DNA of 64,000 nt from Amoebophrya sp. A120 (taxonomy: Eukaryota; Protista; Dinoflagellata). The stretch lies in NCBI GenBank assembly GCA_905178155.1, contig CAJINV010000001.1:10073432-10137431 (forward strand), read 5' to 3'. Below the pieces are notes generated by a model. The model saw only the letters and a program-made list of their open reading frames with translations. It searched no databases and was not told the DNA's origin. Within the stretch, counting starts at the first letter, position 1; each line of letters starts with the position of its first letter. Both the position numbers and the translations under genes were made by a program. Below are positions 1 through 42,439 of this stretch, in pieces.

Positions 1-2
1 AC

Positions 3-7300: not shown

Positions 7301-7619
7301 GTTGGTGAGTGCTTTATTCGTGTAGCTAAGACAGGGGTTCTCTCCTTATGATCGTGCAGTCGCCCTTCTTTCGGTGGCACAGCTTCATTATGTCATTTTG
7401 AGCGCGAGCGATGAGTGCGATGTTGATCTGTGTAATGGTGTCGCTCTCGAGACTACAGCATCCGCACTTGTTCGGTTGCCGTTGCGCCTTGCAATACTTC
7501 GATTCGGAACGGCAGAGCAAATGTAATTAGAGAACATAAGAAGTCCTTCCGCCTCTGCTCACTGAAGACTAGTAACAGTAAGTGTATTGCTCGACAAATA
7601 TATATCTTCCGTCCACTGC

Positions 7620-8447: not shown

Positions 8448-9110
8448 TTTCGTTTGCTGGTTTTTGTTTCAAGGTAAAAATGAATAGAAGAAGAGAACAT
8501 GCAGTTTCTGTTTCACGTGAAACATTTGGTTTGATTTTGCTGAACTGTCGATAGTTGTACCATCAAGCCAGTAGTTACGAGAAAGAGCAGGCTTGCTCTT
8601 CTGTGTTTCAGCAGCCTTTATCAGGTTTGATCATTCATTTGTTCATAGACGAGTGTGTCGAGTGAAGAGGCAATTTACACGATCGACTGTCCATCGTCAT
8701 TCGCCTTAGGTTGTGTCCTTCAGCGAACATCGAATCTACGCCTTCGTTCGCCGACAGCTACACTCGTGAAGAGCACCGGCATCGTGGCCGGAATCGCTGT
8801 CGCTTCGTCGTAATTTTGAATTATGTCGTATATGGCTGTTTTGGCACTTCAGTTTTCGAAAAAAGAAAAATGTTCTAGCGGCTACCGTAGTTGTTCTCCT
8901 CGACTGCCGACTTGGTTTTTTCAACGAAGTGCATGGCACATGAATCACGCATCCTCTACTAAGGGAGCAACTGTCTGCAGCAGGTAGTCCCTTTGCGCAC
9001 AGCAAGTCCAAGACGACAACCTAGAAGATTGTTGCTTCAGTTTGCGACGGAGTCGTACTTATCAGACGCACGATACTCCTGCAGAAACGGAATCCGCTCC
9101 TCTGCCTGTC

Positions 9111-10509: not shown

Positions 10510-11447
10510 TGAGAGCTACGACATTTTCTTGTCCTGATGTTGATGTAACCTGTTTGTAGTTTCTCTTGTACAATGTACTTCAATTTCCTTGTCAGGAGAG
10601 GACTCTACTGTACTGGCTTCCCGCCCCCTTTTTGTAGATGACGTTGAACTTGGCTTCAGAGTTTTGAGATTACGTTCCACACGTGCATTTTCACTTTCAC
10701 ACCATCAATGGATTCCAATAGTAATAGAAGATACAAAACTGCATCTGCTTTTGCAACGCAGATCCTTTTCTAACACTAACGTCACCAGAATGAACTCAAG
10801 ATCGAGTGTCGACAAGCTTGAAATGTAGAAGTTTAACTCAGTCCATCGCCAGAATCCCATTGTCGCCGCAGCAGCAGCTTGGCCGATTTGCGAGCCACCG
10901 CTGGGAAGCGTACGATATCGGTCCTGCTTGTGAAGTCAAATATTCATTCGATTCACCTTTGCCAGTTCCTGCACTGCTCGGTCTTCGTGAATGTCAAAAA
11001 TACAATGACTTCGAATGAAGAATGAACAAGATGATAAAATTACTTGGGTTGGCAGTCGCCTTCGTTGACCCGTCGAACACGTCGTTACCTCGATGATCCA
11101 GTATCGTCCGTATGAAGAAGAAGACTCTGACTCCGCCGATCAACACTCGAATTTCGGTCCTTCGGTAAAACCAAGTCGTGGGTTTCGGGTCGAATGTCGA
11201 ACAATCGAATCGTTTGTTGCCGGTTTACTGCGGATTGCTGTCAAGTTTTAGTTAACTCGAGCGTTTCAAGATTGTTGCTTACTTCGCGACTTTTTCGTGT
11301 ACTGAATCGTTTTTGGTGTACTGATTCAACCGTAGTCGTAGCGCAGAGCCTGCTGCTGCCCATGTATTTTTTTGAAATTGATTTCCGCGTCTCTTCCCAT
11401 ACAATTGTAAACATACCCCCGCCCTCTTTGATTCCACTTTGAAAAGC

Positions 11448-23400: not shown

Positions 23401-23772
23401 TCCGGCGGCCACATAAGTGTACAAATCGACACCGCGCGCTCCTGGCAATCTGAAGGCTCCGAGAACCAGCACCTAGAGCTGCTGCCGAAGAGTGCTGGCG
23501 TGAACCTTGGCAGTAGAAGTTTTGCTGCGCCCACCGGAAGAGATCTCGGTAGTGAGTTACCATCCGCGTCTCCGTCTCCTATGGAATTGCTTTCCTCCGC
23601 TGGCAATATCAAGGCAAGACGCGAAGGTAGTGGTGTGAACCTGCCAGGAGATCACGCGGGTCGGAACGTCCGGAATTCTCGGCAGGATGTGCTAGACGCT
23701 AGGAAGGCGCAAAGAAAGCTGAAAGAGCTCCAGGCCCAGACCTACGGCTTGCGCGATGCTCTGTCAGGCTGA
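11448..23772 (+). CDS. Giant hypothetical protein (~4063 aa) with SH3/KOW-like repeats, Pro/Lys-rich disordered region and coiled coils; exons 11448-21005, 21139-23772
   Basis: The 3271-aa and 904-aa ORFs join in frame via GT-AG intron 21006-21138 (DSQ|VLAST). First ATG is at 11448. Confidence 0.85.
19960..20450 (+). repeat. Coding tandem repeat, about 2.5 diverged units (PAVKGQxTLxRMT...AASMxxRxDALSALLGxGKGSLSS)
   Basis: Three PAVKGQ(A/D)TL(D/E)RMT copies and two DALSALLGxGKGSLSS copies, visible at both protein and DNA level. Confidence 0.85.
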
Positions 23773-24621
23773 GCTCTGTGCTGGCTTTTTTGTTGAACAC
23801 ACAGACTCTGGCTCTCCGATACCGATTTCACTGCAAATGTTTCCAAAAGAAAAACATAGATGAGCAAAGGTGTTTTCTCAATCAAAATGAAACTAAGTAT
23901 TGCAAAGGTCATGGATGATGTTGGATGTTGTATTCGTTTCCAAACACAACTGACTCGCACTTGAAAGATCTGGTTTTTGTGAACAAAAGGAACAGCGAAC
24001 ATCAAGATACGAAACATGAAAATTGGAAAGAAGCACGAGCTGTTCCATCAAGAAAAAGATAGACATTGAATTCTGTTCACTCAGACAGCGTAAGAAAAAG
24101 AAGAGATCTGAATTGCGGCACTGCAAGGAACAAAGAAGAATAGTCTTCAAAGTCTTCGCTTTGATCGATCGAGGTTTGCTGTCATTCAGTGAAGACGAAT
24201 TTCATGTCCGTTTGTTTGCCGAGCAGGTGACTTCACAAGCACAAGACAGCATCTGAATTAAGAAACCAGCAAGTAAGTAGTTCTTCTCACGCATTTGTAT
24301 TTGAACTTTCAAAGAGTTCTGTATGCACGCGGACGCTTTCCCTACGTTTGAGGTTTGACGTCAGTTTTTTATGCCAATTTTTTCATCCTTAATCTTAATG
24401 CTTTTTCCTTTTTTCACTTGAACACCAAAACACCTCCCTTGTCAACAAAATACCCTCGTGCGCTTCCTTGCTTCTGATTTTGCAGAAATCTTCTAGATAC
24501 AGCCTGTGCTGGAGCATCACAAAGGAGAATGTCTGGACGAACGCGAAAACCTGTCAGCGCAACAAGCACAGCACGTTGTTTTGGCGAGCATTTCCCCGCA
24601 GCATGACCGCCCTAGCTGAGG

Positions 24622-27600
24622 ATGGCATCATGGTGGTCGTCGGGCAAGAAAGGTGGCGGAAAGAATCCGGACGCCACCAAGGGCGGCAAGAAGTCGTCCT
24701 ACAAAAGCAACGACTACTACCAAGATAGCAGCTACAGCAGAGCCGCGCATCAACCCCAGTCAGGAGGTGGAGCCGGCTACAACCCAAATGTTTACCAAGA
24801 CCAACATGCGCCGTACCAACCGGCTGCCAGGACTGCGGACCAGTACTACCATAGTGTTGTTCCGGAGTACAACAACGGGAAGCAGGGCAAAAGCGCGTAC
24901 GGAGGAGGGTACAACAACCCTGGTTCCTACCAAGGGTCTTCCTCGGAGGAGAGCTCGACTGTGAATAAAGGACACCACTATGGAGGAAAGAAGAAGGGAG
25001 GAGGGCCCTACGTAGAGCCAAGCATTTACCACAACTCCACCTACGGAGCTGCCGGTAAATTATCTGGCGGTGGTACTTCTAAAGGAAACAAACACGCAAA
25101 GTCGGATGCGTATTACGCTTGGAACGAGTACAATGCCGACTACAATCGCCACAGCAACGCCGGGAGGCAAGCGGTTCTGCAAGACGCTGACCACCGGCCG
25201 GAGCACGTCCCCTTCGCAGGTCCCTCCGGTGCGCCGCCGGGTCTCTCTCCCCCGGCAAGCATGCTGCAGGCGCCCCCGCTCGTGCCGGACTATCCCGGGA
25301 CCAAGGGGTACCTGAGTAAGGGAAAAGACGGAAACTTCGGCGGGCAAGCGAACATCAAGGGGGCAGGAGCCGAGCAACTCACATCCAACGGCACGACCGC
25401 CGCAACCACTGCAGGTACTACAGCTGCAGGGATCACCGCTAAAGCCGCCCCTCCCGCAGACAACAGCCTCTGCCTTGCGACGATTGCCTCCCAGCAAGCC
25501 GGTGGAAGTTCTGTGTACAAATACAAGCGTGAGAGTCCCAACGGGATGCACGTGTTGACGCACATGCCGCTCGTCTCGGATGAGTACCGGATGAAGTTGC
25601 TGCTGAAGAAGACCCGTCTGGACGCCGACGACTTTCCCCTGGAGGAGCGAAAGGAAACCTCCCCGGAGGGGCGGCAACAGCAAAAGCGCTCCCGGTGCCG
25701 CGAGGCCGCGGCGGCGAAGTACTACGACTTTGTGAAGATGTCTACGCAGGACTTGGTGTTCTGCCTGGGTCGCGGCGGGCACACGAAAATGAAGATCGCC
25801 GACGCGGCGGGCTGTAATGTGGAGATCGACCAGGATCGCGGTATCGGCGAGTGCTACTCCAACACGGATTTTGCCGCGTGTCGACGCGGAATCCAGTGTC
25901 TCCAATTCTGCGGTGCCCAGCGGCGCGATGAAACCCCAGTGGTGCGGTACCCGGAGGATTTCAGTGCGGACGTGACGATCATTCATGTTCCGGAGGAAAC
26001 CAGCGGGTTTGTTATGGGAAGGCAGGGCTCTTTTCTCCGGCAACTGGAGGAGATGTACATGGTGTACATCTTTTTCTGCGAACCCGAAGGCCGGGGGATC
26101 TCGCGGGAGCGCGGGATGCGGTACGTGTGCATTCTCGGGGCAAACGAGATGGGGCGGAAAGGGGCGGCGCTGAAAGTCATGGGAGCGGTGGAGACAAAAC
26201 TCCCGGGGTACTACTTGGACGATTGCGACATCCACTACTGTCCGGCGAGCCGGGGCGGGCCGCACGGAGGGACGGGGTTTGACACGGAAGCGAGGACCAT
26301 GAGCAACGACGAAATGAGCTTTGCGGTGGGGAAGGAGGGCCAGACGCGGAAAAAGTTGGCTCGTGCCAGCGCGGGGGCGGCTTTTGAGTTCGTCGGTCTG
26401 ACGGCTTTCATGGCGGGACCGGAGAACGCGAGGAAAAGGTATATTTGAAGTTTAGTTTGCTTTTTGAATTGCGTGCTTGCTATTTCGTGGTCAATTTACT
26501 TAGTTATAGTTTCTCTTCAGGCTTGTGCATTTAGTGAAGGCAATTATCGCGTATTACCGCCACGAGAAGCCCAACTTTTTCTCACTATTCCGAAACTCAT
26601 AATCAAAAAAACAGGCTCCGAAACTATCTTGAAATCCTGCTCCGTCAGCGCTCTTACAGCACTGTTGGCCTCACATTCCCCGACAAGAACACCCGACCGG
26701 ACTGCACTGTTTTGAAAATTCCTTCCACCTACATGGGTCTGCTGAAGGGACAGGCGTTGCGGGACCTGGAAAACCAAACGGACACGTTTTGCTTGGTCGA
26801 AGGAGATCCTGACCTGTCAACCGTGCTGATCATCCTGGGCGGCGAAAACGAGCGGCACAACGCCCAGGTTCGCGTGCAGGAAATCGTGCGGCTCCCGGAG
26901 AATGTTTTGCTCGGGAAGGAAAGCCTCAACACGGGCAAGACCAGGGGCGGAGGTATAGTTTTTTCATGTCAGAATACGCGTTTTTGTTTTCGTTTTGCTG
27001 TGGGTATTTTTCTCGAGCAAGAGACACCGACGTACCTGCATCACAACGATCTTGTCTAAATAATGAAGAGTTTGAGAAGAACAATGAAAATGCCACGAAA
27101 AAACTTTCAGGCTCGGGTAGACTGATTATGGTGGAAGTTCCGATCCCAACACTGCTTCTAGTCGAGAACGTCGAGGAGCTGTTACCTAAGCTTCGCGACC
27201 AGCTGGGCAAACTGCGTATTTCCGTATTACAATGAAAAATGCCCCCACCCCCAAAGTTGCAGTAATTTGTGATACAAAGTATCCAAATGAAAACTTTTTG
27301 TCATGCATGAAAGGACTAATGAATCTTTCTGATGCAGTGTCTAGGCGTATATCGCATTGCTTGCATGACAAGCGCCGCTCTTGCTGGGATCTTGCGCAAT
27401 ACAAATTTTTCTCTATTCACGATTGGAAATCTGTGATGCTGATAGATGCAAGAGGGCGAATGTTTCATTTGCAAAGGTTTGCAATACAAATGCTCCCAAG
27501 TTCGGGGGTGGGGGCATTTTTCATTGTAATATTCCGAGGCGAAGATTCAAGAAGACGCGTTGCGGATCAAAGTGAGCCAGGAGAACGCGGCCCAGTGTGC

Positions 27601-30600
27601 GATGATCTGTGAGAACTTTCTCAACAAGGACATTGATTGCGAAGTTCCCTACTACATCCCACGTGGCATCGGGTTTGCCGTGCTCACTTCGAAGCAACGG
27701 GAAGCGTGGAAGTTCGTAATGGATCAAGGGAGCGGGAAACTGGTCAAGCAGGTAATTTTCTCGCTTTTCCTTTTCCTTTTCAGTGAAACGTTAGAAGTAG
27801 CTGAGAAGTTTTTCATCACTTTTAGCATGCGCCTTTTCAAATCATTTGCTACTCATCGCAGCACACCGCGCCGGCCGCCGTTGCGACTCGGTGTGCAAGA
27901 ACACGATTTTTTTGGCCAGAAAATTTTGAAAAACTTTCAGACCTTCCGCGACCCGAAGAACCCTTTGAACTATCTCGATGAGGAAACAAGCCGGATTTTC
28001 GACTACCCCATCGCCGGCGAGCGCGGCGACCGGGGAGAGGTGATTCCGGCTAGTTTCATTCCCTGTGGCGCCATACCGGTCAACAGCATTCTCGAGGATG
28101 TCCGCAGCCGCTCGCGGCTCCGGGTGCGGATTTTCAAGGACCAACGCCGAGTCTTGTTCAGCGGTTCGCTCAGTCAGGTGGTTGCGGCGAAGCGGGATCT
28201 GGACTTGTGTCTCGGATCCTTTTTAACTTTAGTGATTCTCGTGAACCAGGAGTGCGTGTTTGACGAAAAAATGGTGAGCCATTGCGTCGGGAAGATTCAG
28301 GCAGACATGCAGTACAGGCATCACATGATCGCGGCAAACATCAAGGATTTCCGTCTGACTTTGTCCGGCAGTAACCTCGCCGTCTGGGAGGCGAAGGAGC
28401 TGGTAGAGAAGGAGCTACAACACACCGTTCTCGTCGCGAAGCAACAGAAAAAGAACAAGGAGAAGACCCCCAAAAATCATACCGGTGCGGCTGCCTCTTC
28501 TGCTGACACCGCGGCGTCCTCGTCGAAAAGCACTACTAATCCGGCGGAAATCGGGTCGCTGACGCTGACCGAGGGGAATTTGAAGAAACTTGCGGACAAG
28601 CCCAAGAAGAAAAACTGGGCGGATTACGAAGATGATCTCTCCAACGAACAGAACCAGTGGGAGAATCGGAACAAAAATAAACCACCGCCCGTCGTGTTTG
28701 TGTCCGTCGACCAGTACTACTTGTTGCCGCACTTAAGACAGGGCGTTTTGGCGAAGGAACGGAACGAACCGACGTCGGAATGGCTGCGGGTTCCGGAGGA
28801 CGATAGCAGCTTTGTAATGGGAAAAGGGGGCCGAACGAGACTGAAAATTTCCGTCGTGTCCGGGTGCCGCATCGAAATCAAGCGCGACCAGGAGGATGGA
28901 TTGGAAGTGATTGAGTTGACCGGCACTGCGCTGGAACGACGTCGGGCGAGGAAATACTTGGACATGATCCGGATCCAGCGAAAGGGAGCCGTGCACGTGG
29001 ACGAAGAAGCGCACAACGACAAGGACTTAACCGCGATTTCCGTTCCGCACGACTGCGTCGGGTTTGTGACGGGGGGCGGAGGGTCTCATCTGCGAAATTG
29101 CGAAACTGAATTCCACACGCTCATGTTCTTCTGCGATTACCACCACCAGCGGGGCAAGGGTATCCGGCAGCAGACGGAGGAACGACTCGTGATTTTCGGG
29201 CAGCGGCGCGGCCAGCTCGGCAGCAAGTTAAAGGTGATGAGCGCGATCGAAACGAAGATGCCAGGCTACTTCACGCGGAACCGGCGTGCGGACTACTTGC
29301 GCGGGCGGGAGATCGCGTCCGTTCCGGTCGAGGAGGGCCGCGGGAGAAAAAACGTGATCCACGGCGAAGATTGGAAACGAGAGGACTTCACGCCGATCCT
29401 TTGCGGGGCGGAGTGGGGCATTGACACGATGTGGGTGGAGCAGAACGACTTGTCCTTCGCGATGGGGTCAAACGGGGTGACGCGGAAGAAGTTGTGTAAG
29501 GCGACGAACTGCATTTTGGAATTCGTCGGCAACATCGCCCACCTCGGTGGGACGAAGCGGGAGAGAAGGACCTGCCGGGACTATTTGAACTGGTTGTTGT
29601 GCCAACGAACCGGCGTCGTTGCTTTGGAAGATCTCGATGGCTCCGTCTACTCCGCGAAGCAGGTTTTCGCGGAAACCAAGCGCCGCGAGCGCCGCCGACG
29701 GAGGTTGAAAGAGGAGGTCCTGGCCGAGCGGGCCGCGGCCAAGAAGCGCATGCGCTCGAAGCACAATAAGGACGGCGGAAATCAGCAGGAACTGACCGTC
29801 GAGGAGATCAACGCAGCGGAGGAGCGCGAGATTAAGCAAAGCCCCATGTCCGCGAGTCCGGACGTCGACCGGCTGGAGAAACAAGCGGCTTCTTCCCCCG
29901 ACGCGGTGAATCAAGATCCTGACCAGAACCACCACAACTCTGACCACAGCGACAACTCGAACATGGGTGACTTTTCCGCAGAAGAGGAAGACGCGGTCAT
30001 TCTGGCGGTGTCTCAGCACCGGAAGAACCCGGATCTGAAAACCAAGCACCGCCGGCGCGACCAGAAGCGGTTCACGCACAACATTTCCCGGGAGGAGTAC
30101 CACGAGTTTGTCTACGACTGGATGGCGGACCGGGATGACGTGGATGTGCTGTTTTTCTACGAAAAATGCGACATCTTTTCCGTACAGGCCTTGCGGCAAG
30201 TGGAGGAAAACACAGGGACGTACACGTTCGTCGACAATCTGTCAAAACCGAACTGCCTGTTCGTCTGCGGTGCGTACCGGCAGAACCGCCAGAAGGCCAT
30301 GGACGCCATTTACGAAATTTTGCGCGAGTACGACGAGTTGGACAGAACCTCGTGGGCGGACGAAACCCCCGAAGCGGGCAAGGCATGTCGGATCAAGGGG
30401 CCAGTTGGACCGAACAAACGACATTTGTCAACGGTATTTATATTCCTCGAATGTTTTGACTATCACTATTACAGTTTTTGCTTTTGTATCTGTGCCGATG
30501 TATGAGTATGATGATGAAGATTGAAGCTGAAGATCCTTTGTTGCAAAAGTGAGTTTGTAGCTTTCAAATGAGCCCGAAAATCAAAATTCAAAACACCCAC

Positions 30601-33600
30601 CACCACAGTCCGAGAAAGATCTGCTGATCCAGTCCGGGGGCGCCAATGTGGAAGTAGGAGCGGCGTACCAAGAGCTTTCCATGACCCACACGCGGTTCGA
30701 AGACCGCGATCTCGCCTTCTACACGATGCTGGCGAACCGCAGAGACAACGTTGCGTTTTACAACAACGAGTTCCGCGAGGAAAAACTGGTGTACAACAAG
30801 AGCAAGGATTTCCGCGAGGAGGACGAACACAGTGACGGGGGGCGATTTGATTCTGTGGAGCTCTGGCAGAGCCCGCTGCCGGACATGCAGATCTACCAGC
30901 AGCCGGGACCGCTGGGTGAGGATCCGTTGATTGAGGGACTGGAAAGCTCCCGGTTGCGGGTCAGCTTGCTCGTCGCGAAACACGCCATCCGCTTAGAGGG
31001 CGAGCCGAAGGAACTGCGCGACGCCTGGCGGAAACTGAACACCTTTGCCGCGAAGTTTGAAACTCTGCAGTTGGAGGTCCGACAGCAGAACGCGGACCAG
31101 AATCTGCTCCGGTCGGTGTTGTCGCACTACGTCGGGCCGCTGCCGTGGTTGAGCAAGGCGGAGATCAAGGACGGGGACAAGGTGACGCTCGTGGGCCACA
31201 GTGTTAGTTTGAACAAAGCCTTGAAGATTTTAGAGGAGTACCTCGGTGACAAATCCTTCGTCTACAAGACAAAAGCCGTCGCGAATCCGAACAGCGCATC
31301 GCTCGCTCTGAAAACCGGCGGCGCCTTGGCCGCAGACCGATCTGCGTCCGCCGCAGCACACAAGTCCGGCGGCGAACGCAGCCAGGCCAGACGCCAGGAG
31401 CAGGCCAGCATCGCGGACAAGCACGCGTCGCTGGATCCGTCGGCCGTAGTGGGGGTGCGCGATTTCCGCACCAATAACGACCTGACCGACAAGATCAAAA
31501 TGGCCTCGGAGGAGATTGGTTTCGTGCTCGGCACGTCCGGCACGACGCGCGACAAACTCGGTATTGCTGCGAAAGCGTTGCTGCACGGCGATGTGATGGA
31601 CAGTGACACGGTGACGGTGGAGGGAAGCAATTTCGCGCGCGAGTTCGCGAAGAAGTACATCGGCATGGTGCGACAGCAGCGCGTCGGCCCGGTCCCGGTG
31701 AATCGGGATGACGAGGATCTGATGTTGGTGGAGATTCCCTACGACTGCATTGGGCTCGTCACCGGCGTCCACGGCGCACATTTGCGGAAACTGGAGCGCG
31801 CTTGCCAAACGCTGATGTTCTTCGCGGACTACTTCAGAAAGGACAGCGAGAAGAACAGCAAGGAAACCGGCATCGCTTCGGATACCGAGGGGAAACCACA
31901 GAAACTCGCCATCTTTTCTCCCGACCCCCGTGCGCGCGCTTGGGCGTTGCTCCGGGTTTTCGGACTCAGTGATTTCCCGCGGGAGCAGGTTGTGATCTCC
32001 GATTTGGAAAAGCTGATCTCGACCGCGTTCGAAAGGCACAACGAGCGCGTGCGGGGAGAAGTGTTGCAGAATCTGGACGGTAGTGGTCAAGGTGAAAACC
32101 AGGCCGCTGCCCGCGTCGAGCGCGACGAGGTCATCGGGGTCGAGTCCCTGCCGATGAGCAAGAAGTACCATGCGGCAACGGACGGTCACGTGCTGCGCCG
32201 CACCGCAAGGAGCTCCGGGTGCATCGTCGAGCAAATCGGCAACAGAGCGATTGTGCTGGTCGGGTCGGAAAGCGAGCGGAAACGGGCAAAAGCGTATCTC
32301 GAATGGAACAGCGACGAGAAGCAGCTGCCGCAAGCGCTGGAGGCCTCGAAGCGCAAGGACTGCATCGTTTTGCGCAGTGGGAAGAAACTGTCGACCAGTT
32401 ACGCCAAGACCTATGGCTCCGGGTTCGATTCTCTAGAGACAAACCAGCTGGAATCCTGCATCGTTTTCCCGCTTCTTGAGGGTGACATCAACGCGAAAAC
32501 AGCGGAGCCACAATCCGGGGCCACGACCGCCTCGGACTTACACAAAGTCGCGGACGGATCGGTCGAGATTCTGGACGGGACGCTCTCTTCCTCCTCTTCT
32601 GACAATCCCCACCCGGTTTCGGCGGAGCAGAAGTCACAGCAGTGCCACTACCAGGTCGGGATCTTCGCGTGCTCCATGCGCGCACGGGTCTTGATGATGC
32701 TGCGGCTGTTGAAGCAAGACCACGAAAAGGAAAAGTCCAGTGCCTTCCTGGATCTCTGCAAGCAGGAGCTGAACCGCAGTCGCCGCCATCTGCGCCACGC
32801 CGTCGCCGCTAGAAAGGCGAGCGCCGACGCAAACAGCATCGACGCCGCAACCAACAGCAACCCGCCGTCGCCACCGAGCGTGCACTCGCGGCAGTCGTCA
32901 AAGGAGTCGAAGCAGGAAATGAAGAAATCCACCTGGCTGTACCAGTACCATTCCTTCGCCGACTACACCGAGTCCGCGATCCAGAAGGAAGTCAAGGACT
33001 TGGAGGATTTCGAGTTTGAGGAGCTGAAATTCACGAAAAACGAAAAGTACTACACCGGGTCGCTCTCCAAGCACCGCTCGAAGCTCGTGGAGGCGTCCGG
33101 TGCCTTCCTGGAGTTCTGCGGCAACGGCTGCATTCTCGGCGGATCGAAAGACAATCGCCAGCGGTGCAAGGATTACATGGCCTGGCTGCTGCGAAAGTGC
33201 TTCGAAAAGTCTGGTTGGGACGAGTACGACCTGGACGCCGAGGAGAACTGCAGTGCGTGGCGGGCGGTCATTCCGCATTTGGAGAACGTGTCTTTGAACC
33301 TCCGCACCGACGTTCTCTGCTTCCGCAATCCGGGGGCCGCGATCACGACCGAGCAGATTCGCGACGCAGAAATCAACTTCGGCGTCTTCACCTACTTCCG
33401 ACGAACCAACGACGATAAGGACCGCGAATTGCTAATTTTCGCTGCACAGTACGAAAAGCGGCTCCACGCCTACCGCCAACTGCTCGCGTGCCTGCTCGGA
33501 GGCAGGGACCGCAATCGAAAGCGTTTCCGTCGGCGGAGAAGGGACAGGGAACGGCGGCGCCGCTGGTGGGACGAAGACGACGGAAAATGGGACGACGAGG

Positions 33601-34397
33601 ATGGAAATTATTACGACGATGAAGACGCTGGCAATGCAGCGAACTACGACGAGGAGGACGATTACGAAAAACCTAAGAAAACTACCTCTACTCGCTCGGG
33701 TAAAAAGAAACAGGTCGATGATGATTTGGATTATGCGCGGTCGCCAAGAAAGCGAGGCGTTACGCCTCCGCCGAGGGGAGCTGCAAACAAAGCTGCCAGC
33801 CAGCGGTCCTCCCCTTCGAAAGCGGGTAAGAGCAGTCGGGCCGAAACCCCAGCGAATGCGAGTCGCGCGAGTCGGCGACGGCGCGCTCCGCTGCAGAGTG
33901 AGGAGAATAATCGCAACGAATTTCAAGCCTTGTCCCCCGCGAAGTCTGGTTCGAGGCGAGCTGGGATGCAGTCGAATCGGGATGCGGACTACGTGTCCGA
34001 ATCCAGTTCCGAATTGGACGAAGACTACACTCCGCGGGGCCGGGGTCGTGGCGCGCGCCGCAACTCTGTGCGCTCGAAGGGCACGGGCAAGGCGAATGCC
34101 AGGGGAGAGGCGACGCCGGCGGGCAGTTCGGCGAGCCGACAGCGTGGAGGTGCAGGAACCGCGGGCGCTCTCGGGGGCACCAGTCCGCGCGACAACAAGG
34201 GACGAGGAAAGCAGGCGACACTTGGGGGAGGAGGCTTGTTGTCCTCGGACTCGGAAGACGACTACAGTTCGGACGATGATGAAGACGATGACGGCACTCA
34301 CTCGGAGTACAGTTCCGCTAGTGGCTCGCAAGAACCTCGTGGTTACCCTGGAAGCGAGAACAGCGGCAGCTGGAACGGACACAGCAGGTACACATGA
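24622..34397 (+). CDS. Multi-KH-domain RNA-binding protein (~2920 aa); exons 24622-26438, 26615-26952, 27111-27223, 27536-27751, 27920(or 27941)-30433, 30609-34397
   Basis: Repeated KH GxxG loops (LGRGGHTK, MGRQGSFLR, VGKEGQTR, MGKGGRTR, VTGGGGSHLR, MGSNGVTR, LGTSGTTR, VTGVHGAHLR). Five listed ORFs join in frame through introns 26439-26614, 26953-27110, 27224-27535 and 30434-30608. Intron 27752-27919/27940 is tentative. Confidence 0.85.
27224..27535 (+). mobile_element. Introner-like non-canonical intron (312 nt, GT...CC) with a perfect 28-bp TIR and 5-bp direct repeat TTCCG
   Basis: TATTACAATGAAAAATGCCCCCACCCCC (27225-27252) is the exact reverse complement of 27504-27531. TTCCG occurs at 27220-27224 and 27532-27536. 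Removal joins KLRIS|EAKIQEDAL in frame. Confidence 0.92.
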
Positions 34398-36295
34398 TCC
34401 CGGTACTGCGCACAGCCGCGTCGCAGGCGGCTCTCATACCTGCCGAAACTACAACATGATCGAAGTACATAGTGGTTCTGGTTCTGCCGGTGCATTCTGC
34501 CTGAGTGGGGCCGAAGAGGATTTATTTGGGCTGTGTCAAAATCGGAGGAGGTGACACTGACACGACTGATTCCCTGGAATTTTTCGTAGGAGTCCCGCTC
34601 GACTGCTTCCCATCTCCGCTGGGTGTGACGCGTTGGATCGGACTGAGTTGCAGGGATTCGTGTAAAAGAACGCAAGTTCTAGTAGACCCAGCAGACAGCT
34701 GCAAATGGAGACGCAATTATCCCGATCACTCCACCGCAATCGCGAGTACCACCTGTGGTCGAGAGGGCTTGATGATGGGGGAGAAGGTAAATGCAAATCT
34801 GCGAAATCAAAAGCATAAGCAGTAGAACATGAGTCTACTCTTCGGATCCCGAATCTGTTGGACGTGCTCGGTATTAGTACTACGGTTATTCTGGTTTTGA
34901 AGTAGCGGAGGCGCTTCTTCATTTTCCATGCGGACTGGGCTAAAGAAAGAAACAGAATGGACTGCGCTATAGCTGCTAGGGCGCCAAAGATTTCTGATCT
35001 TTCCCAGAAGCAGAAGGTGCATGCCCTAAGCATTCCCTTTTTCACATGCTCATGCCTTAATTATTTCCTACGAAACTGACAGTGCGTCTCGCAGAATTTC
35101 ATTGTCGCGCATGCCTCTTAGAAGTTCTTACACGAAGAACTAGCTTCCTGAAATGGACCATGAATCTTGGCGTAAATAAAACTGAAACGGATGGAGGACA
35201 AGATGCTTTCAGATCTGTAGTTCACATCTAGGTTTGCTTATATATGTATCAAGTGTGCGTCTGGAACGCTCAAATTCGATTTTTGGTCGCAGAACAGGGC
35301 GACCACGGCTCAGTAGTTTGTGAAAAGACGCGCGGTTGATGAAGCTTGAGCTTCTTGCTTCAGAACAGACCCATCGAACGACTCATACCCGGAGTAACTC
35401 GATGCTCAGCAGCGACTACACCACTCGAAAATCCGTTTCATTTTTTAACTGTAAAAACGTTTGATGTCCATGCAATCGAGCAAGCACCATTTACCAGCGA
35501 CTGTCAGTTTCTGCTTGTAAACTATTTCTGACCGATGAAAAAGCTGTGCTACACACATCTACCTGCTTGTCTCAACAGCGGTAAATTTGTTGCAGTATGT
35601 TCCCGCTACCGCTGCATTTTTCCAGGGCGCAGAAGTCAAGATGGAAACGTTCCGTAATTCAGGAGGAATCGAAGGTTGAAATAAGCAGTGAAGTTTATTT
35701 GCATGCCATCGAGTTCTCGGTCGTTGGTAAACACGTAGTCTCTCGTGGTTTCATTAGAAGTGCAAGGGTGAATGTCTGTGTGGGCACAACTGCTTCTCGG
35801 CGATTCGGTAAAAATGTTTTGGTGTGATCACATGTAAAAAGCATTTTGGGTTCACATTTAGGAATGTCCTCCCCTGTACAACTCTGTTGCACTCGTATCA
35901 GCGATCAGACTCACAGTTCGTTCTTTTGGAGCGATTCCCTCGTGTTGCTCTACTCCGTCGTGTGTTATGAGCCTCGTCATTTCGTCATCGAATCGGGATT
36001 AAAAGCGCATCTTTGGGCAGCATTGTGGTTCGACAATTAATTTTTGTGGTCGAAATTACCTGTCTTCTGCTGCTTTAGTCGAATTCAAGCTCGTTTGTCT
36101 TGTCGCGCTTAGGCCACTTTATTTAGGTTCGTGTAGCCATTCAGAAGGATTCATCACACAGTGTTTTTTTGAACGAGCCCTAATATTATTGTCTTCACGT
36201 TGAAATCTTAAGAGCGGAGCACGTCTCTGAATATGTAACCGGAACAAGAAGTCACCTACTAGCACCACGACTCTTTTGACCAACATAGAAGAACC

Positions 36296-39200
36296 ATGGC
36301 GGAGCAGGCGAGTCCGACTCCTGTCGTTCCGCTCGCGACCGCGAACGCAACAACCTCCTCCGTATCGGGGCTTTCTTGGCTTCTGGGCGTTGCGCTACTG
36401 AACGTTTCCTCCTTCACGTGTACATTGGGCCTGGTTGTGCAGAAATGGTCAACGTTGCAAAAAGACTGGAGCAAGCTCGTCTGGATCCTCGGGTTCGCAG
36501 TTTTTATGCTCGGAAACATCGTCAACGCCGCGGCGCTCACGTTGGCTCCGCAGTCTTTGCTATCGTGCCTGGCGCCGACCACGCTGGTCTACAACTCGAT
36601 TTTGTCTCCCTGCATCCTGGGCGAGAAATTATGCATTGCAAAAGTATCGTACTAGTATAAATCGCAATACAAATTTTTTCAAGAAGAAAAATGGAATTTG
36701 TAATGCTGTTTTACCTTAGGAAGGACATTTGTCATGCATATTTGCAATTAGTACGAGTACGATACTTTTGCACAGGATAGAAATTCACCAAGTACCATTC
36801 CGCCTCGATCGTGTGCATCTTCGTGGGCTGTTTCATAACGGTGAACTTCGGTCTCCATCCCCCCTCAAACGCACAGACGAAACTAACCGTGGAGCAAGTG
36901 TGGTATTTCGCGACCCGACCTCTGTTCCTGGTCCTGATCTCGCTCAGCGGCATTGTCGCACTCAGCATCTCGGGGCCCATCGTCGCGTGGCGGAAGAGCG
37001 GTTTACCAATCTGGGCGTTGAGGGAGAAGGTGTCGGCTTTGCAGCTGATGTGCCTTTCCTGCATCTTCGGGGCGATTTCGATTACGAACACGAAGATCAC
37101 GTCGACGCTTTTTGCGAACAAGTACGTGGAAAACGAAAACACAGCAGCGAGTACAAGTCTGCCATATTGGATTCTGACTACAGAAACCGGCAGAGTGTGC
37201 CTGTTGCTTGCGACCTTCGGAATTTTCGCCGTCGCATTTTTCTCCATCGGACTCCTAAATGTCACACTCACGCTCTACAGCTCCCTGACCACAGTATTAA
37301 TATTTAGTCTTAGTGATTTTTATGATTTGCTAGGTAATAAACCAGCCAAACCCCGGCGAAAGCCGCCGGGGTCGGGGCTGTACGTTAGAGGGGACCCAGG
37401 GGAGAGGTGATTCCAAGGTAGAGGGGGGTGGGGCAGGGGAAATCGAGCGCAGACAAACCGATAACGCAGCGACGGTGCGGAACGTGGAACGACGTTGAAC
37501 AGAGCGGTCCGGAGCGAAGAGCCTCGTAGTGACGGAGACGGAGACGCGCGGAGAAGCGGCTTCATTCACGATCAAATATTTTTCACAATACCGCTTTCAT
37601 TCATCAATCATTCACAATACCGCTTTCATTCGATCAAATATTCATTCACAATCACGATCAAATATTTTTCATTCACGACCGGTTTGGCAAAAATGCGCCA
37701 CAAATACCGCCCTCTTGGGGTGGGCGGGGCTGCTAGATGTTTGCGATGGTGTTTGGCTGGCGCCAATCACCGTCACAAAATGGAGCGCGTCCACTTTCAG
37801 GGGACCTCCGCTATCAGGGGTCCCCCGCTTTTCGGGGTCTCTGCGCCGAGCCATGGGCCCCCGCGCCTGGGGGTCGGTCGTAGCGCTATCAAGGCTCGGC
37901 GCCTTTAGGGGACCCCCCCCTAGCTGGGGCACGTTCGCACTCGAAGGGCCACCGCTTTCAGGGGTCCTCCGCTTTCAGAGGTCCCCGTTCTGGGGGTTGA
38001 GCTTCCGCGCTCGGCGGTTCCGGTGCCTTTTCCGGGCGACGCGCTTGCCGGGGGGGGAGAGGAGGAGTTCGCGCGCGAGCGCTGCGCCCCCGAGGCGGTT
38101 GCACCGCTGCGGGGGCATTTCTTTCAGGGGCCCGGCTTTCGGGTTCCGCGGCAGAGGGCCGCTCTTCTGTGCTTTCCGTGTGATTTTTATGATTTGCTAT
38201 GTAATTTAGTCTTAGTGATTTTTATGATGTGTATATTTAGTCTTAGTGATTTTTATGATTTGCTATGTCTGGCATTGTTAAGCTTGCTGATTTGTTTCAA
38301 GTTATGAAGTCATGCATTACTAATAATTATGTGAACGTGTGTGGAAATGTACTTCTTCAAAAAGTAGGCATACCCATGGGCTTGTCAAGCGCGAACTGTA
38401 TCATAGATACAGTTCTTTGCTCGCTTGAAAGCCGATATTTAGAAAAAATTTCATATGCAGAACGCCTCAATTTCCGGGGAACATGCAGATATGTCGACGA
38501 CATCATATCAGAAAACACAAATTTTGTACGGTGTTGGCATGACATATACGATTCGACGGGTTTAACCCTCGAAACGGAAAGTTTAGGTAAAACGGCGGTA
38601 TTTTTAGATTTAGAATTAACAATAGTAAAAGAAGTTGTGCACTATAAAACCTTCTCTAAAAACTCCTTATTTTCCTTCGCTGTTAAGCGGTACGTTACTG
38701 GTCGTTCTTGTATTAGTAAATCTACAATTTTTTCCAGTTTTTGTGGTAGTTTTCTTCGCTTTTATACCAATAACAACCTATTTTTGTATTTTTTACGTGA
38801 AGTAACAGAGCTTATTCTTCGAATGAAGCCCTTACTTGGCTTCAAAATCATTAGGAAAACAATTGAAATTCTCATCACCAGACATGTAGAAAATAAGTGG
38901 TTAGACAGCGTTTCACTGCGTCGCATTTTGCTTACTTTCTGCATGAAGGTCCTAGAATACAAGTTTCAATATATCACAAAATAGCTACCTATACATATCT
39001 CCCCAACCCCCCCCCCGCTACGACATGTGCGAAATGTGTCATACTTGCATCTCCCTCGTTTGTGTCATGCGCTACCTTCTGTTCTGTCATGCAGGCCCAC
39101 AATATGTGGTTGTTTTTACCATTACACATTTCCACGCCTTCTTAGAAGTCACAAAATATGTTCCGACATATTTTACTTCTCAAAAAAGGTTGTCGTGCAT

Positions 39201-42200
39201 GGACGGGTTTTACAAAATGCATAACTTTCATACTGGGTGAGGTTATAAACTCCAAAAATTATTAACAAAGTCATGAACTAAATATTTTGTGTTTTTTTGA
39301 TGCTAAATTATTGTAATCTGCGTGCTTTTACCTATTTGTAGTTACCATGACAAGGTGAATTTGCCCTTCGACAGGAGTCGACCGTGAGTTGTTCTTCCTT
39401 CGCCTCGACGTTCTGAGCGCTCTGATATCGTTCGTATATCTTTTTGTAGTTTCTTTATGTGCTGATGCTTTTAGGACGGTATGCGATGATTTCAATGTTG
39501 TCTCTCCTTTTCTCCTTCGGTTTTGTTTATTGTCGTTCTTATTTTTATCGATTTTTGCTCTCTTTTGTGGCTTTGCATTTAGGACGGTGTGCGACGTTTT
39601 CGATGAGAGATACTCTTTTCTACTTCGGTTTTGTGTATTATTCGTACTCGTTTTGTATTTACGTATATCGGTCTCTCGGTTTCGCCTGCACGTTCCCTCG
39701 AATTTTTATTTCCATGTTCCTCGATTTGCTCGTTCTTCGATCTCTCGGCTCTCGATCTCGATCTCTCGATCTCGACACTCGATCTCGATCTCTCGCTCTC
39801 GATCTTTCTGTCTGGTGCTGTTTTCGGTTTACTAGGATCTAAATTATCTACGATCCTTACGATCACCAACACGTTAGATCTGTGAGTTCCTTGCTGGTGA
39901 ACCGGTACCCTTGTCCTCTTGGAACACGATGCCACATTTCTAAGCGAGCACTCCCATCCTGTCCTCACTAGGTCTACTTCATCGGGTAGAGAGGCACTCG
40001 ATGGTGAGACGGCAAGGGCCGAAGTGTTGTTCTTAGTTGCGCGCATAGCTAGTTATCTACGAGCGAATCAAAATTCAAAAAATCAAAACCAACAGGTAAA
40101 GTACCTCCAAAAATAAAAAACAAAAATAGCTTAAATAGTTCGCATGCGTGACATTCTTGTATCATTCCCAAAACTTCTCAAATCTTGACATTTAGTCTTA
40201 GTGATTTTTATGATTTGCTATGTAATAAATAGGTAGTTAGCTTGGGCTGGCGTACATCTATATGCGCCTCTTCCATCCTTTTGGGCTTCAGTCTGGGCCG
40301 GGTTGCCACGTCTTCAGGGCGTCGCGGTATGTTTTCTACACTGGGAAATGACCTGGCACACTCGGGGCCGGCGGCCTCTCTTCCCTGGGAGATTGATGTT
40401 GGTATGCGCACTCCCCGACAAGTAGTTTTGCGGAGACCCCCCGCATCCGCGCGGAGGATCTCGGATAATATTCTCCAAAGACTGTAGCTGTTCCGTCTCT
40501 TCGTCTTCTTGAAAGTGCTTCTATTGGCGCGCCGGTAATGTTGGGGGCATTGCTTATGTGCCCAGAGGTCTTGTCTATTTTGCAAGGTGACATCTTGTGG
40601 CCGGGGTCGCCACTGTTCGGCAGCGTCGCTTGGCGCCTTATTTCCGTGCTCTATGGTCGATATCGATATACCTTCTGTCCTCGATCCCGCCTTGCTTTGG
40701 GAACAGGGGTCGTTTGGCACTGGCGGTACCCAATCCGTTACCCTTGCGAACTTGTTCCCATGCTTCGGCTGGGGTTCTTGGTGTCCAATTTGTTCGCCCT
40801 CTGTTCCCTTAGCAGGGCGGGGCCGAGGATCCTCCAAGTCAATTACAATTTGTGGCGCTACATATTTATTGCTTCTTGTGGGACGATGGCGCTTCGGGAT
40901 GGTTGTGGTTCTCTGGTGGTGGATTCGTCTTTAACAGGATGTCTCTATGGGCACGGTGTGCCCTCGTTGGCGCGCCGATACAATCATAGGCGCACGGATT
41001 CCTTCCGGCGGTAAGGGGCTCGCGCGCGAGCCTGTATGCCTTGGGGGCTACGATAGCGTTATCGTTCGCCGCGCGCTCCTTGGGAGGACCTTTTGTCGCT
41101 AGCCGCGGCAGGCATTGTTAGGTCTAGTGCCTCTAGTGACACTTTGGTGCACGCGGAGGCGGAAGGGGGGCCGCAAAGGGGCGGCTGTTCGTGCTCGGTC
41201 TTCTGTTGTTTGTCAGTATCACGAAGACCGGCGCACGCGCCGGGGCGTTTTGTGCTCACTCAGGGCAGCTACGTTTCAAGTCTTGCGGGCTTTGAGGCTT
41301 TGCTGAGTTTACTCTGGCGGAATTGGTGTCGTCACTGTATTGCCGGATCCAGATGTGGTCACGTTTTTCGCGGTTACATGGAGCGCGCCTTCCGTTCGGG
41401 CTATAGCTGCGGAGTAGGGGCTCTGGGGCAAGTGGGGCTGGGCTGGCGCTTCTCCCCCCATATAACCACCTGCGGTGGGGTTCTGGGGGGTCTTGCCTGT
41501 TGGCCAGGTGGTGGTGGAGTGGGTCGTTCCCTGCTGCGGGAGCGAGGGTTCGACCCGCTCGACCCAGCCCCAAGGGCGCCGTCCAACGGGTTGCTCGGGT
41601 TGGTTGGACGCATAGGATAACAGATGGAAGGAACGCAACGAAATAGTCTTAGTGAAGATTTTTATGATTTGCTATGTAATAAATATGTTCATCATGGCTG
41701 TAGCTTGAAGTTGAATGCGAATCAGGATTCTGTGCTCTTCCGACTTTTTTTTGTCTACTATCTTCACATTAACTTAAGCGAAACACAGCAAAAAAACACT
41801 GACAGCCAACACACTTTATAACAGGTGACACTCGACTGTGTTTTAGGCCTCGCGATGCAGTCGCTCTACGGTGCTGTGTTTTTCGAGGAGTACAAACTTT
41901 ACTCCAGAGCAGCCTTTTTTGGGACCGTCTGCGGCGTCAGCTGTTCCTTTGTCGGTTTGGCGTGTCTGCACCTGGCCGGAAAGGAGGAGGAAAGAATGAT
42001 GGTGAACATTCCAACCGCTTTCGGAGTCGACGACATAGACAGGCATCGAGTTGGGACGAAGGATCACTGCAGCCCGTCGCTACTCAACCACCAGAAGTTC
42101 GGGCCAAACGCGCACCTGCTCGAGCGGAGCGTCAAAAAGCTCCGAGGAATTTCCGAAGAAAGGATATTGGTGCCCGCTTCGCCGATTCCCAACGTCACTG

Positions 42201-42439
42201 ATCAGGACGGCGTCGAGCCTTGTAGTGGTTTAACCCCCGCTTCAGCGACCTACAACACGTTCCATGAGCCCGTGCGAGGAATTGCGCCGGTTGGGGCAAA
42301 GACAGCCAACGTAGCACCTTCATCAAAACAAAATCAATATCAAAAACTTTCAAGAAGCGGTTCCAGTACCAGTTCTGCTAGTCACTCTACCACTGCTAGT
42401 ACAGTCAGGTCGGCCAGTAGTTCGAGTTGTGATTCCTGA
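36296..42439 (+). CDS. NIPA-like magnesium transporter (DMT superfamily), 485 aa; exons 36296-36630, 36786-37293, 41825-42439
   Basis: Multiple TM segments and NIPA-type motifs (GLVVQK, WILGFAVFMLGNIVNAAALTLAPQSLLSCL, ILGEKF, LYSSLTTVTLDCVLGLAMQSLYGAVFFEEY). Exons sum to 1458 nt in frame. Confidence 0.85.
36631..36785 (+). mobile_element. Introner-like non-canonical intron (155 nt) with a 17-bp perfect subterminal IR and 7-bp direct repeat AGAAATT
   Basis: TGCAAAAGTATCGTACT (36637-36653) pairs with AGTACGATACTTTTGCA (36756-36772). AGAAATT occurs at 36624-36630 and 36779-36785. Removal gives LGEKF-TKYHSAS, and no GT donor is available within the direct repeat. Confidence 0.88.
37561..37680. 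repeat. Scrambled micro-duplication tract
   Basis: CACGATCAAATATTTTTCA at 37567 and 37653; TTCACAATACCGCTTTCATTC at 37582 and 37611; several TTCATTCAC units. Confidence 0.85.
37795..38150. repeat. Degenerate ~17-18 bp minisatellite (CGCTTTCAGGGGTCCTC-like)
   Basis: Multiple variants: CTTTCAGGGGACCTC, CTATCAGGGGTCCCC, CTTTTCGGGGTCTC, CTTTAGGGGACCCC, CTTTCAGGGGTCCTC, CTTTCAGAGGTCCCC, CTTTCAGGGGCCC. Confidence 0.7.
38269..38984 (+). mobile_element. 5'-truncated Penelope-like retroelement reverse transcriptase (distal RT motifs plus thumb), probably Naiad/Chlamys-type
   Basis: QKVGIPMGLSSANCI, CRYVDDI, AVFLDLEL, YKTFSK..FSFAV, FCGSFLRF match PLE RT motifs. The frame is intact but begins at a copy of the 40-nt repeat. 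No endonuclease follows the thumb. Confidence 0.85.
39471..39810. repeat. Two diverged 108-bp tandem units followed by a (TCTCGA)n-like tract
   Basis: TTAGGACGGT...CTTCGGTTTTGT recurs at 39471 and 39579. A TCTCGATCTCG run at ~39737-39805 encodes RS/RD dipeptides on the minus strand. Confidence 0.7.

Follow-up and report, generated by a model that had tools for sequence, protein, structure and literature searches.

How does a gene come to hold, within one intron, a stack of unrelated sequences separated by copies of the same short segment? This question is raised by a locus of Amoebophrya sp. A120, a parasitic dinoflagellate, where an array with the layout R1-A-R2R3R4-B-R5-C-R6 lies within a single intron of a transporter-like gene (Table 1). 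An intron segment of ~40 nt (R) occurs six times around three inserts (A, B and C) that bear no similarity to one another and have G+C contents of 0.62, 0.40 and 0.58. A first-pass annotation had described these features as a six-copy ragged repeat bordering three unrelated fragments, and comparisons of the repeats and of the inserts bore out every part of this description. In the whole 64-kb stretch of DNA that we analysed (the window), the R copies are the only direct repeats of at least 20 nt at a spacing of 200–9000 nt. As detailed below, we regard the array as a side product of an unusual form of retrotransposition with long duplications, which is also found elsewhere in this genome.

Table 1. 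Features of the array and of the surrounding gene (positions in the window; positions within R are counted from 37302 as position 1).
Feature	Position	Strand	Description	Basis or remark
Upstream exon	36811..37293	+	host gene (weakly NIPA/EamA-like membrane protein)	open ORF; 3' end is a codon boundary
Intron	37294..41824	+	GT..AG, 4531 nt, contains the entire array	RNA-contig junction
R1	37302..37341	+	target positions 1-40	G for T at position 32; runs on from original upstream intron
Insert A	37342..38179	+	838 nt, G+C 0.62, non-coding, single copy	genome search; read-contig depth 18.7
R2	38180..38205	+	target positions 12-37	repeat comparison
R3	38204/6..38234	+	target positions 1/3-25, then GTGT(AT) filler	alternative: extends as far as position 32, two errors
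R4	38233..38268	+	target positions -2 to 34	33 nt identical to 37300-37332
Insert B	38269..40189	+	1921 nt, 5'-truncated RT-encoding Penelope-like element	homology to resident copies
R5	40190..40231	+	target positions 1-42	fullest internal copy
Insert C	40232..41643	+	1412 nt, 5'-truncated, non-coding family with 3' tail GGAAGGAACGCAACGAAA	family comparison
R6	41644..41685	+	from target position 4 on	3-nt insertion; runs into original downstream intron
Downstream exon	41825..42400	+	open frame	ORF and RNA contig

An RNA-like contig (depth 84) spans 36900-37293 and then joins position 41825 through a GT..AG junction (37293/41825) that skips 4531 nt. Since this contig connects the two exons directly, the 4.5-kb intron is removed by splicing, and the splice sites are intact as had been claimed. 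Collapsing R1 onto R6 leaves 189 nt, in agreement with the normal-size intron of ~190 nt predicted by the first-pass annotation. The intron has grown from 189 to 4531 nt and is still spliced out; the array in it has no function. The same annotation had assigned the gene an intact NIPA frame. The frame is indeed open on both sides of the intron, but the NIPA identity is weak: in a search of the individual exons of the gene model, Mg_trans_NIPA matched an exon further upstream (36296-36637) with E = 3e-4, which is below the curated cut-off, and the two exons flanking the intron gave no NIPA match in Pfam.

In principle, such a structure could be mimicked by a chimera that arose during long-read assembly or when a gap was filled. 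The contigs assembled from 31-mers are interrupted within R, and the order of the inserts is not proven by them but rests on the long-read assembly. However, every unique junction is present in short-read contigs at single-copy depth: read-derived contigs match R1-A-R2R3R4, R4-B, B-R5, R5-C and C-R6-exon without differences, the last of them spanning 41614-42300. The depth of the array contigs is 18.7–26, compared to 21.6–23.6 for the flanking exons (single-copy level), and a collapsed form of the array was absent from the DNA read-derived contigs. The array therefore withstands the objection of a gap-filling chimera, and we consider an assembly artefact to be a negligible possibility.

We then turn to the origin of R. 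A 29-nt core of R, searched with up to three mismatches, matches the 115.5-Mb genome at the array locus only (reversed control: 0), and this settles the uniqueness of the 40-mer in the affirmative. Because R is unique to this locus, it is, judging from sequence, a target-site duplication derived from the target and not from the inserts. All copies are sub-intervals of one master interval of ~44 nt (positions -2 to 42). R2, R3 and R4 are contiguous, with no insert separating them, and the end of R2 and the start of R3 share two nucleotides (AT) of microhomology; the junctions of the array generally show microhomologies of 1–5 nt and short fillers. The copies differ from each other by only about 2%, so the near-identity noted in the first pass is close but not perfect. 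We considered and rejected a single composite element that would carry R at its termini, since R has no other copies in the genome and nowhere else are A, B and C found together. The uniqueness of R also dismisses a possibility raised as a potential refutation, namely that a multicopy element has the 40-mer as its own terminal repeat.

The inserts themselves indicate which process placed them there. Insert C belongs to a family of about 40 copies, whose 18-nt tail occurs 40 times in the genome with a duplication directly after it. Eight other C-type copies carry duplications of 41, 42, 48, 48, 55, 65, 68 and 71 nt that start right at the 3' tail, and control windows 300 nt downstream gave no matches except where they fell in another stack or in internal repeats. 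The 5' starts of C-type copies vary (40232, 40584, 40592, 40714 and 40717), and one copy, L014, reaches further 5'. Homology to L014 and L002 sets in precisely where C and A begin, and these 5' ends might be taken for full-length termini; this reading was dropped because the coincidence is trivial, the array copies themselves beginning at these points, and because L014 extends further upstream. Insert C has also lost ~228 nt by an internal deletion at 41216-41220, where a 5-nt microhomology is found. Two loci of the families in the array show further rearrangements: L026 is a head-to-tail partial tandem of the 6-kb C-type element, the only partial tandem seen, and L004 contains a duplicated 5' stub plus filler. 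Together with the microhomology at the C deletion, these structures suggest template jumping in these families. The 6-kb C-type members contain no long ORF. An 1850-aa RT ORF on contig C20 shares no DNA with the C-type family or the array and gave no Pfam match; hence a coding partner (RT/endonuclease) for the C family was found neither among the 6-kb relatives nor in this RT element.

Insert B encodes the C-terminal 239 codons of an RT followed by the 3' UTR, and the first ~210 RT codons are missing. The encoded sequence is 72% identical to an intact 449-aa ORF at C2:151746-153092. The suggestion that B is composite did not hold, as B is one contiguous 5'-truncated element and another copy (L009) has the RT and the 3' region in the same order. 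The canonical 3' end of B (CTTGAC-A/T-TTTA) overlaps R5 by 5 nt, and four other B-type copies end at points corresponding to 40189-40194, consistent with a fixed 3' end adjoining the target. By read depth B is single copy; its nearest relatives are 67–86% identical, and the genome holds no close source copy. A HMMER search with the B-family RT returned 528 matches, the best long ones of which combine an N-terminal GIY-YIG with RVT_1, and a protein atlas places this RT near HTH_animal/RVT_1 clusters. These matches and clusters point to membership in the Penelope/telomerase-related RT clade. Pfam gave no match, GIY-YIG endonuclease included, for the B ORF and the related 420-, 449- and 595-aa ORFs, and the B family may be endonuclease-deficient. 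No hammerhead ribozyme was detected with Rfam in the array and six related loci, and no other Rfam ribozyme or small RNA in the array and related elements. A search of solved structures with the B-family RT gave no match, and the only match in a word-indexed protein search was the organism's own protein. Two B-type copies elsewhere have duplications of 13–22 nt, whereas B in the array lies between R copies of 34 and 42 nt; in this respect B looks like a passenger.

Insert A has a single relative in the genome, the locus C11:1457135-1457322, which matches the first ~180 nt of A at 71% identity. Pfam searches with the ORFs of A and C gave no matches. A is single copy and has only this partial relative; it can be called no more than a putative 5'-truncated copy of a parasite mobile-element RNA. 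The first-pass annotation had suggested another source, namely that the fragments could be host DNA archived in a repeat-spacer-like array. In a wider form of this view, DNA of the dinoflagellate host, or other foreign DNA or RNA, would be stored in a repeat-spacer array with a function of its own. The single-copy state of A and B, their lack of a close source copy in the assembly and the high G+C content of A would agree with this view. But the C family is resident and has more than 40 members, B is 72% identical at the protein level to resident ORFs, and the first 180 nt of A have a resident relative. In addition, exact-pattern scans, which detect exact matches only, found no match of A in metagenome contigs, the array is spliced out, and R differs from the repeats of comparable stacks in the genome. 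An archive of host DNA is contradicted by these findings, and we regard foreign archiving in general as very improbable.

These comparable stacks occur at three further loci, on contigs C3, C12 and C4, each with its own repeat. At ~5.965 Mb of C3, a 64-70-nt repeat occurs three times around two different inserts. At ~1.5965 Mb of C12 there are four copies of a 37-66-nt repeat, and the rightmost insert is C-type. At ~0.103 Mb of C4, two 99.9%-identical inserts (E) lie between 38-nt repeats in the order R38-E-R38-E-R38. The repeats of these stacks are unrelated to R and to one another. Since no repeat is common to two stacks, R does not qualify as a functional repeat. Counting the intron array, four of ~20 distinct C-type sites sampled are stacks, which is too frequent for independent insertions across 115 Mb.

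How, then, was the array assembled? B and C end at canonical 3' termini of their families in one common orientation, which marks them as products of reverse transcription from RNA and not of the capture of loose DNA. Both are truncated at the 5' end, and the fixed 3' end (B and C), the 5' truncation and the target-site duplication are hallmarks of target-primed (non-LTR-type) retrotransposition. We propose that one target-primed reverse-transcription event, jumping between RNAs and the target overhang, built the whole array, and we give this proposal about an even chance. The chain of steps, the strand geometry and the enzyme are what we infer from the finished product. A staggered break would have opened 8 nt inside the short intron, with one nick in the bottom strand close to position 1 and another in the top strand about 42 nt further downstream, a long stagger that appears to be the norm of the C-type family. 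The 3'-OH of the bottom strand would then prime reverse transcription of a C-type RNA. Jumping at each template end, the RT would copy the ~42-nt top-strand overhang, then B RNA via an ATTTA microhomology, the overhang three more times, A RNA, and the overhang one last time. Sealing of this product to the left flank would give R1-A-R2R3R4-B-R5-C-R6, all in one orientation. In this model the rightmost insert is the first to be copied, and it is C-type both in the intron array and in the C12 stack. The five re-copyings of the overhang would require repeated strand displacement, which to our knowledge has been shown for no RT in this setting. A counter-point to a single event concerns sequence divergence: A and B are without a close source copy, yet the R copies are ~2% divergent. 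Of the two mechanisms put forward earlier, synthesis that returns to the same target, in the form of template switching by an RT, fits the junctions better than plain serial insertion does; the capture of loose DNA is not supported.

A series of separate retrotranspositions, each re-cutting an existing copy of the duplication, would also give repeats around inserts, with later unequal exchange blurring the boundaries. Re-cutting is possible in this scheme because the nick sites are restored whenever the duplication is long, and the R1 elements of Drosophila, spaced by a 14-bp duplication, offer a precedent (PMC2718515). The two 99.9%-identical inserts of C4 would be explained by re-insertion or unequal crossing-over, and insertions that were aborted could have left the R-R junctions that contain no insert. 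The ragged ends speak against such a series: the last target position is 40 in R1 and 37 in R2 but 32 in R3 and 34 in R4, and the first is 12 in R2 but about 1 in R3-R5. Simple serial cut-and-fill insertion requires for adjacent junctions that the right start is not left of the left start, or that the left end is not right of the right end. However the 2-nt overlap is assigned, this rule is violated, either at A/R2-R3 or at R2-R3/R3-R4, and the ends of R thus misfit the simple series, by a margin of only 2–5 nt. Unequal exchange of R copies, or fillers that mimic the target by chance, could rescue it. The stack repeats are also unrelated and unique, with no common recognition site for re-hitting about one fifth of the sites, and the B-type duplications elsewhere measure only 13–22 nt. 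On balance we consider serial re-insertion the main alternative, though less likely than the single event. Repair of a double-strand break with long overhangs by microhomology-guided synthesis is less probable still. Polymerase theta produces templated insertions through repeated annealing and dissociation, and an enzyme of this type might have captured free cDNAs and copied the flank as filler. The 1–5-nt microhomologies and short fillers at the junctions would suit this process, and a check of the gene inventory found that the genome has three loci for family-A polymerases and two for Ku. On the other hand, B and C adjoin R at their exact canonical 3' ends and the inserts are co-oriented, as is characteristic of priming on the target. 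Furthermore, duplications of 41–71 nt flank single C-type insertions genome-wide, so the stagger belongs to the element's own insertion route. Returning to the single target-primed event, we suggest tentatively, and at somewhat less than an even chance, that it represents a distinct mode determined by the enzyme, in which a complex at a 40-70-nt staggered break re-copies the overhang, switches between unrelated RNAs and completes an array in one step.

Several known systems share parts of this picture. The R1 arrays of Drosophila 28S genes have been explained by new copies entering the duplication that lies 5' of a copy already in place (Stage and Eickbush 2009, PMC2718515). Like these arrays, the array of Amoebophrya consists of retroelement copies arranged head to tail in one orientation with a target-duplication spacer between neighbours. 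In contrast to R1, which uses one 28S site, one element family and a 14-bp spacer, Amoebophrya uses unique unrelated sites, different families and spacers of 26–42 nt (up to 70 nt elsewhere); there is no common target site, and the spacer ends misfit stepwise re-insertion by the same few nucleotides as above. Known RT chimeras likewise string several templates together in one event through joints of short microhomology. They join RNA copies directly, whereas here a copy of the target overhang stands between them, up to three in a row. The rotifer element R9 makes a 126-bp target duplication. This too is far above the usual 5–20 bp and implies widely staggered nicks; however, R9 is rDNA-specific and inserts singly, while the duplications in Amoebophrya are variable (41–71 nt) and lie at non-specific sites. 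Naiad/Chlamys Penelope-like elements (Craig et al. 2021, PMC8557442) resemble the B family in that the B-family RT matches proteins with GIY-YIG and RT, and they resemble the Amoebophrya genome more broadly in having partial head-to-tail tandems and non-autonomous relatives. Unlike this type, the B-family ORFs (449 and 595 aa) show no endonuclease domain in Pfam and no hammerhead was found. The duplications of Penelope-like elements are short, 8–10 bp (PMC3846280). With CRISPR and integron cassette arrays the likeness is limited to the repeat-insert-repeat picture: here the repeat is a one-off local piece of intron, the inserts are truncated retroelements, and there is no common repeat or recombination site.

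Arrays of CRISPR- or integron-like appearance in this genome consist of stacked, truncated retroelements whose target duplications are very long, and the resemblance is a false lead. If the single-event reading is true, re-copying of the target by an RT between template jumps would be a possible new junction type; we found no description of it in the literature searched. On the more tentative reading of a distinct, enzyme-determined mode, the templates would include RNAs that have no close source copy in the genome, as for A and B, and nature would here provide a DNA writer that uses several templates, through which foreign or rare RNAs could enter the genome. The process can enlarge introns more than 20-fold with splicing unbroken and can fuse unrelated sequences, and in this way it bears on how introns and genes evolve in a parasite with a compact genome, most of whose repeats are unclassified (PMC7789003).

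The intron at 37294-41824 of a transporter-like gene contains six copies (R1-R6) of a piece of intron sequence of about 40 nt, R, which border three inserts, A, B and C. The coordinates that we re-derived for this array agree with the repeat layout of the first-pass annotation. The original target, as inferred and numbered from 37302 as position 1, reads ATTTAGTCTTAGTGATTTTTATGATTTGCTATGTAATAAATA, and the R copies diverge from each other by about 2%. Besides these copies, the 64-kb window contains no direct repeats of at least 20 nt at a spacing of 200-9000 nt. As to the uniqueness of R, its 29-nt core, searched in the 115.5-Mb genome with up to 3 mismatches allowed, matched at the array locus alone (reversed control: 0). 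R is therefore part of the target and not of any element.

Features of the array, contigs from DNA-like run reads that cover its junctions, and stacks at other loci. The target is read up to position t before a junction and from position b after it.
Feature	Position	Target positions or content	t	b
R1	37302-37341	up to 40; position 32 G instead of T		
A	37342-38179	insert	40	12
R2	38180-38205	12-37		
R2/R3 junction			35-37	1-3
R3	38204/6-38234	1/3-25 + GTGT, or to 32 with two errors		
R3/R4 junction			32	1 or -2
R4	38233-38268	-2 to 34		
B	38269-40189	insert	34	1
R5	40190-40231	1-42		
C	40232-41643	insert	42	4
R6	41644 onward	from 4; 3-nt insertion		
R1-A-R2R3R4 contig	37303-38262			
R4-B contig	38239-39922			
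B-R5 contig	40006-40219			
R5-C contig	40194-40417			
C-R6-exon contig	41614-42300			
Stack on C3	~5.965 Mb	64-70-nt repeat x3; C-type insert and unrelated 838-nt insert; array extends past retrieved sequence		
Stack on C12	~1.5965 Mb	37-66-nt repeat x4; one A+T-rich and two C-type inserts		
Stack on C4	~0.103 Mb (G000:C4:102129-105040, L050/L051)	R38-E-R38-E-R38		

The junction-covering contigs show zero differences from the assembly. Their depth (18.7-26) is like that of the exons in the same run (21.6-23.6), and a collapsed, array-free form was sought among the DNA-like run contigs without being seen. On these grounds we reject an assembly artefact. The read contigs end within R, so that the order of the inserts depends on the long-read assembly, and the DNA-like run is possibly the one behind that assembly. 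In the RNA-like run, a 1954-nt contig of depth 84 connects 37293 to 41825 with GT..AG ends, skipping 4531 nt; the intron is thus removed together with the whole array. This contig and the open frame preserved in both flanking exons bear out the intact splicing and frame claimed earlier. Without the array, the intron would measure 189 nt. The Mg_trans_NIPA match in an exon further upstream (36296-36637), from a domain search in which exons were taken singly, is weak (E = 3e-4, under the curated cut-off). The intron separating exons 36296-36637 and 36811-37293 holds a 38-nt inverted repeat (36630-36779; 82% complementary, arms 74 nt apart), which we take to resemble the hairpin-type introner introns of Amoebophrya.

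Insert C is a member of a non-coding family. The genome contains 40 occurrences of its 18-nt 3' tail, GGAAGGAACGCAACGAAA (reversed control: 0); the sequence taken as the head of the family is GACAYATCTACCCCGGTAGA, and the 5' truncation points of the copies differ. Since the copy at locus L014 reaches further upstream, insert C is also 5'-truncated. At 41216-41220 it lacks about 228 nt that are present in all other copies; the BLAST segments overlap here by 5 nt, which suggests a microhomology-mediated jump or deletion. Relatives of its final 135 nt stand at 96-98%. A reverse transcriptase (RT) or nuclease linked to this family was sought in its 6-kb members and in an RT ORF on contig C20, and none was found. 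A non-coding 6.1-kb element with segments of C (L026 2186-8701; G000:C1:5535185-5541700) is followed, without an intervening target copy, by a repeat of its initial 218 nt and final 130 nt, a head-to-tail partial tandem reminiscent of the pseudo-LTRs of Penelope-like elements.

Insert B had been considered probably composite. It is a single contiguous, 5'-truncated element, as the copy at L009 keeps the RT and 3' region in identical order. Its ORF of 239 codons shares 72% identity with an intact ORF of 449 aa (C2:151746-153092), over residues 212-447 of the latter, and its 3' terminus, CTTGAC-(A/T)-TTTA, is common to four further copies. Pfam does not recognise the B-type RT. A full HMMER scan with this protein returned 528 relatives, the long ones with an N-terminal GIY-YIG nuclease domain joined to RVT_1. 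Among Penelope-like elements, those of the Naiad/Chlamys type have this architecture (PMC8557442); the B-family ORFs themselves differ from it by having no recognisable nuclease domain. The ORF in the array (38265-38984) is intact and encodes the C-terminal RT part, the first RT motifs being absent; its start ATG (38265-38267) is contributed by R4. An RNA-like contig covers 38235-38984 at a depth of 28.7, about one third of exon depth. Another, of depth 15, leaps 243 nt between 38984 and 39228, directly after the stop codon, with non-canonical CT..TT ends; as one side is only 30 nt long, it may be an artefact or derive from another copy. Within the 3' UTR lie a tandem duplication of 108 nt and a microsatellite of the CTCGAT type (39321-39640 and 39740-39800). 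In the B-type copy L004 (G000:C4:10451225-10451834, minus strand), the 5' end of the element recurs at the 5' junction as an 18-nt stub, and this stub and a TCC-T9 filler lie between the element and its 13-18-nt duplication. On C20, an open frame of 1850 codons (L072 797-6349) is RT-like at its C-terminus, where it has the motifs RGMPMG and YLDD. The frame shares 29% identity with the B-type RT, has relatives on both C18 and C6, and gave no Pfam match.

Insert A is non-coding and single copy, and a relative (71% identity, C11:1457135) exists for no more than its first ~180 nt. It starts with a G+C-rich hairpin (37342-37385), CCCCGGCG-AAAGC-CGCCGGGG, followed by GTCGGGGCTGTACG. This hairpin is retained in the sole relative (L002, G000:C11:1457135-1457322, minus strand), where the changes still permit pairing; Rfam gave no match to it. 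The three inserts share no mutual similarity and never occur jointly at other loci. The proposal that they archive host DNA is rejected: none of these features points to host DNA, B and C belong to resident families, and the first ~180 nt of A have a resident relative. A and B, both single copy by read depth, are without a close source copy in the genome (nearest relatives at 71% for A and 67-86% for B), in contrast to the small divergence between the R copies and the close relatives of the end of C. Possibly the source copies were lost or are polymorphic in the population; an origin outside the genome is less likely.

At C-type copies elsewhere, the sequence right after the 3' tail repeats upstream of the copy. 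These duplications measure 42, 65, 71, 68, 41, 48 and 55 nt, and 48 nt in a subfamily with another tail. The sampled pairs contain 0-2 mismatches each and 7 in 438 nt in total, and control windows 300 nt further downstream gave matches solely within internal repeats or a different stack. R is such a long target-site duplication, which is a habit of the C-type family; B-type copies at other loci have duplications of merely 13-22 nt. Four of about 20 distinct C-type sites sampled, the array locus included, are stacked, each on a repeat of its own that is unrelated to the others. This fraction is beyond chance re-hits in 115 Mb, and stacking therefore belongs to the insertion process itself. On C4, the two C-type inserts of 1.4 kb are 99.9% identical (one base different in 1475), and arose either by unequal exchange between duplication copies or from one RNA copied twice. 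The searched passages of the A120-genome paper describe mostly unclassified repeats and make no mention of such stacks (PMC7789003).

Such an array could have been built by serial re-insertion into the duplication, which is the published account of R1 arrays with 14-bp spacers (PMC2718515). Here this is possible if the R copies were reshaped by unequal exchange, but there is no shared target to account for the re-hits. Under stepwise insertion, an uninterrupted copy of the target is cut each time at left b and right t, giving [..t] insert [b..]; for neighbouring junctions k and k+1, it follows that t(k) <= t(k+1) or b(k+1) >= b(k). Neither inequality holds between A and R2/R3. With three A residues assigned to insert A (t = 37), these two junctions comply only when R2/R3 is taken as (37, 3), a reading under which R2/R3 and R3/R4 break the rule. 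The violation amounts to only 2-5 nt. All R copies are contained in one interval, -2 to 42, with entry points clustered towards its 3' end (32-42) and exit points towards its 5' end (-2 to 12). Nested copies with clustered entry and exit points are expected from repeated copying of one physical template. The stepwise failure and the common interval together favour a single event of target-primed reverse transcription. Polymerase-theta-type repair that captures free cDNA also fits the junction microhomologies, and a gene inventory found Ku and family-A polymerase genes in the genome; this repair leaves unexplained, however, the canonical 3' ends and uniform orientation of the inserts and the equally long duplications at single insertions.

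In a single target-primed event, a nick in the bottom strand near position 1 and another in the top strand, about 42 nt downstream of it, would leave complementary 3' overhangs. A C-type RNA would be the first template copied. At every template end the enzyme would switch to the top-strand overhang, and at the end of the overhang to another RNA or back onto the overhang; the B RNA may have entered via the 5-nt ATTTA common to its 3' end and R positions 1-5. Such an event would explain why B is flanked by 34- and 42-nt copies despite the short duplications of its family, and why the rightmost, first-copied insert is C-type both here and at C12. Signs of template jumping in these families are the partial copy adjoining the full-length 6-kb element of L026 and the 18-nt stub with filler of L004. 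End-to-end template jumping is documented for the R2 RT (cited in PMC2718515). From the first-pass interpretation, then, a real array and RT template switching back to the target are retained, and the host archive is not. Truncated retroelements, stacked together with long target duplications, make up the array, which a single template-switching event probably produced. The array itself is without function and is lost with the intron at splicing.
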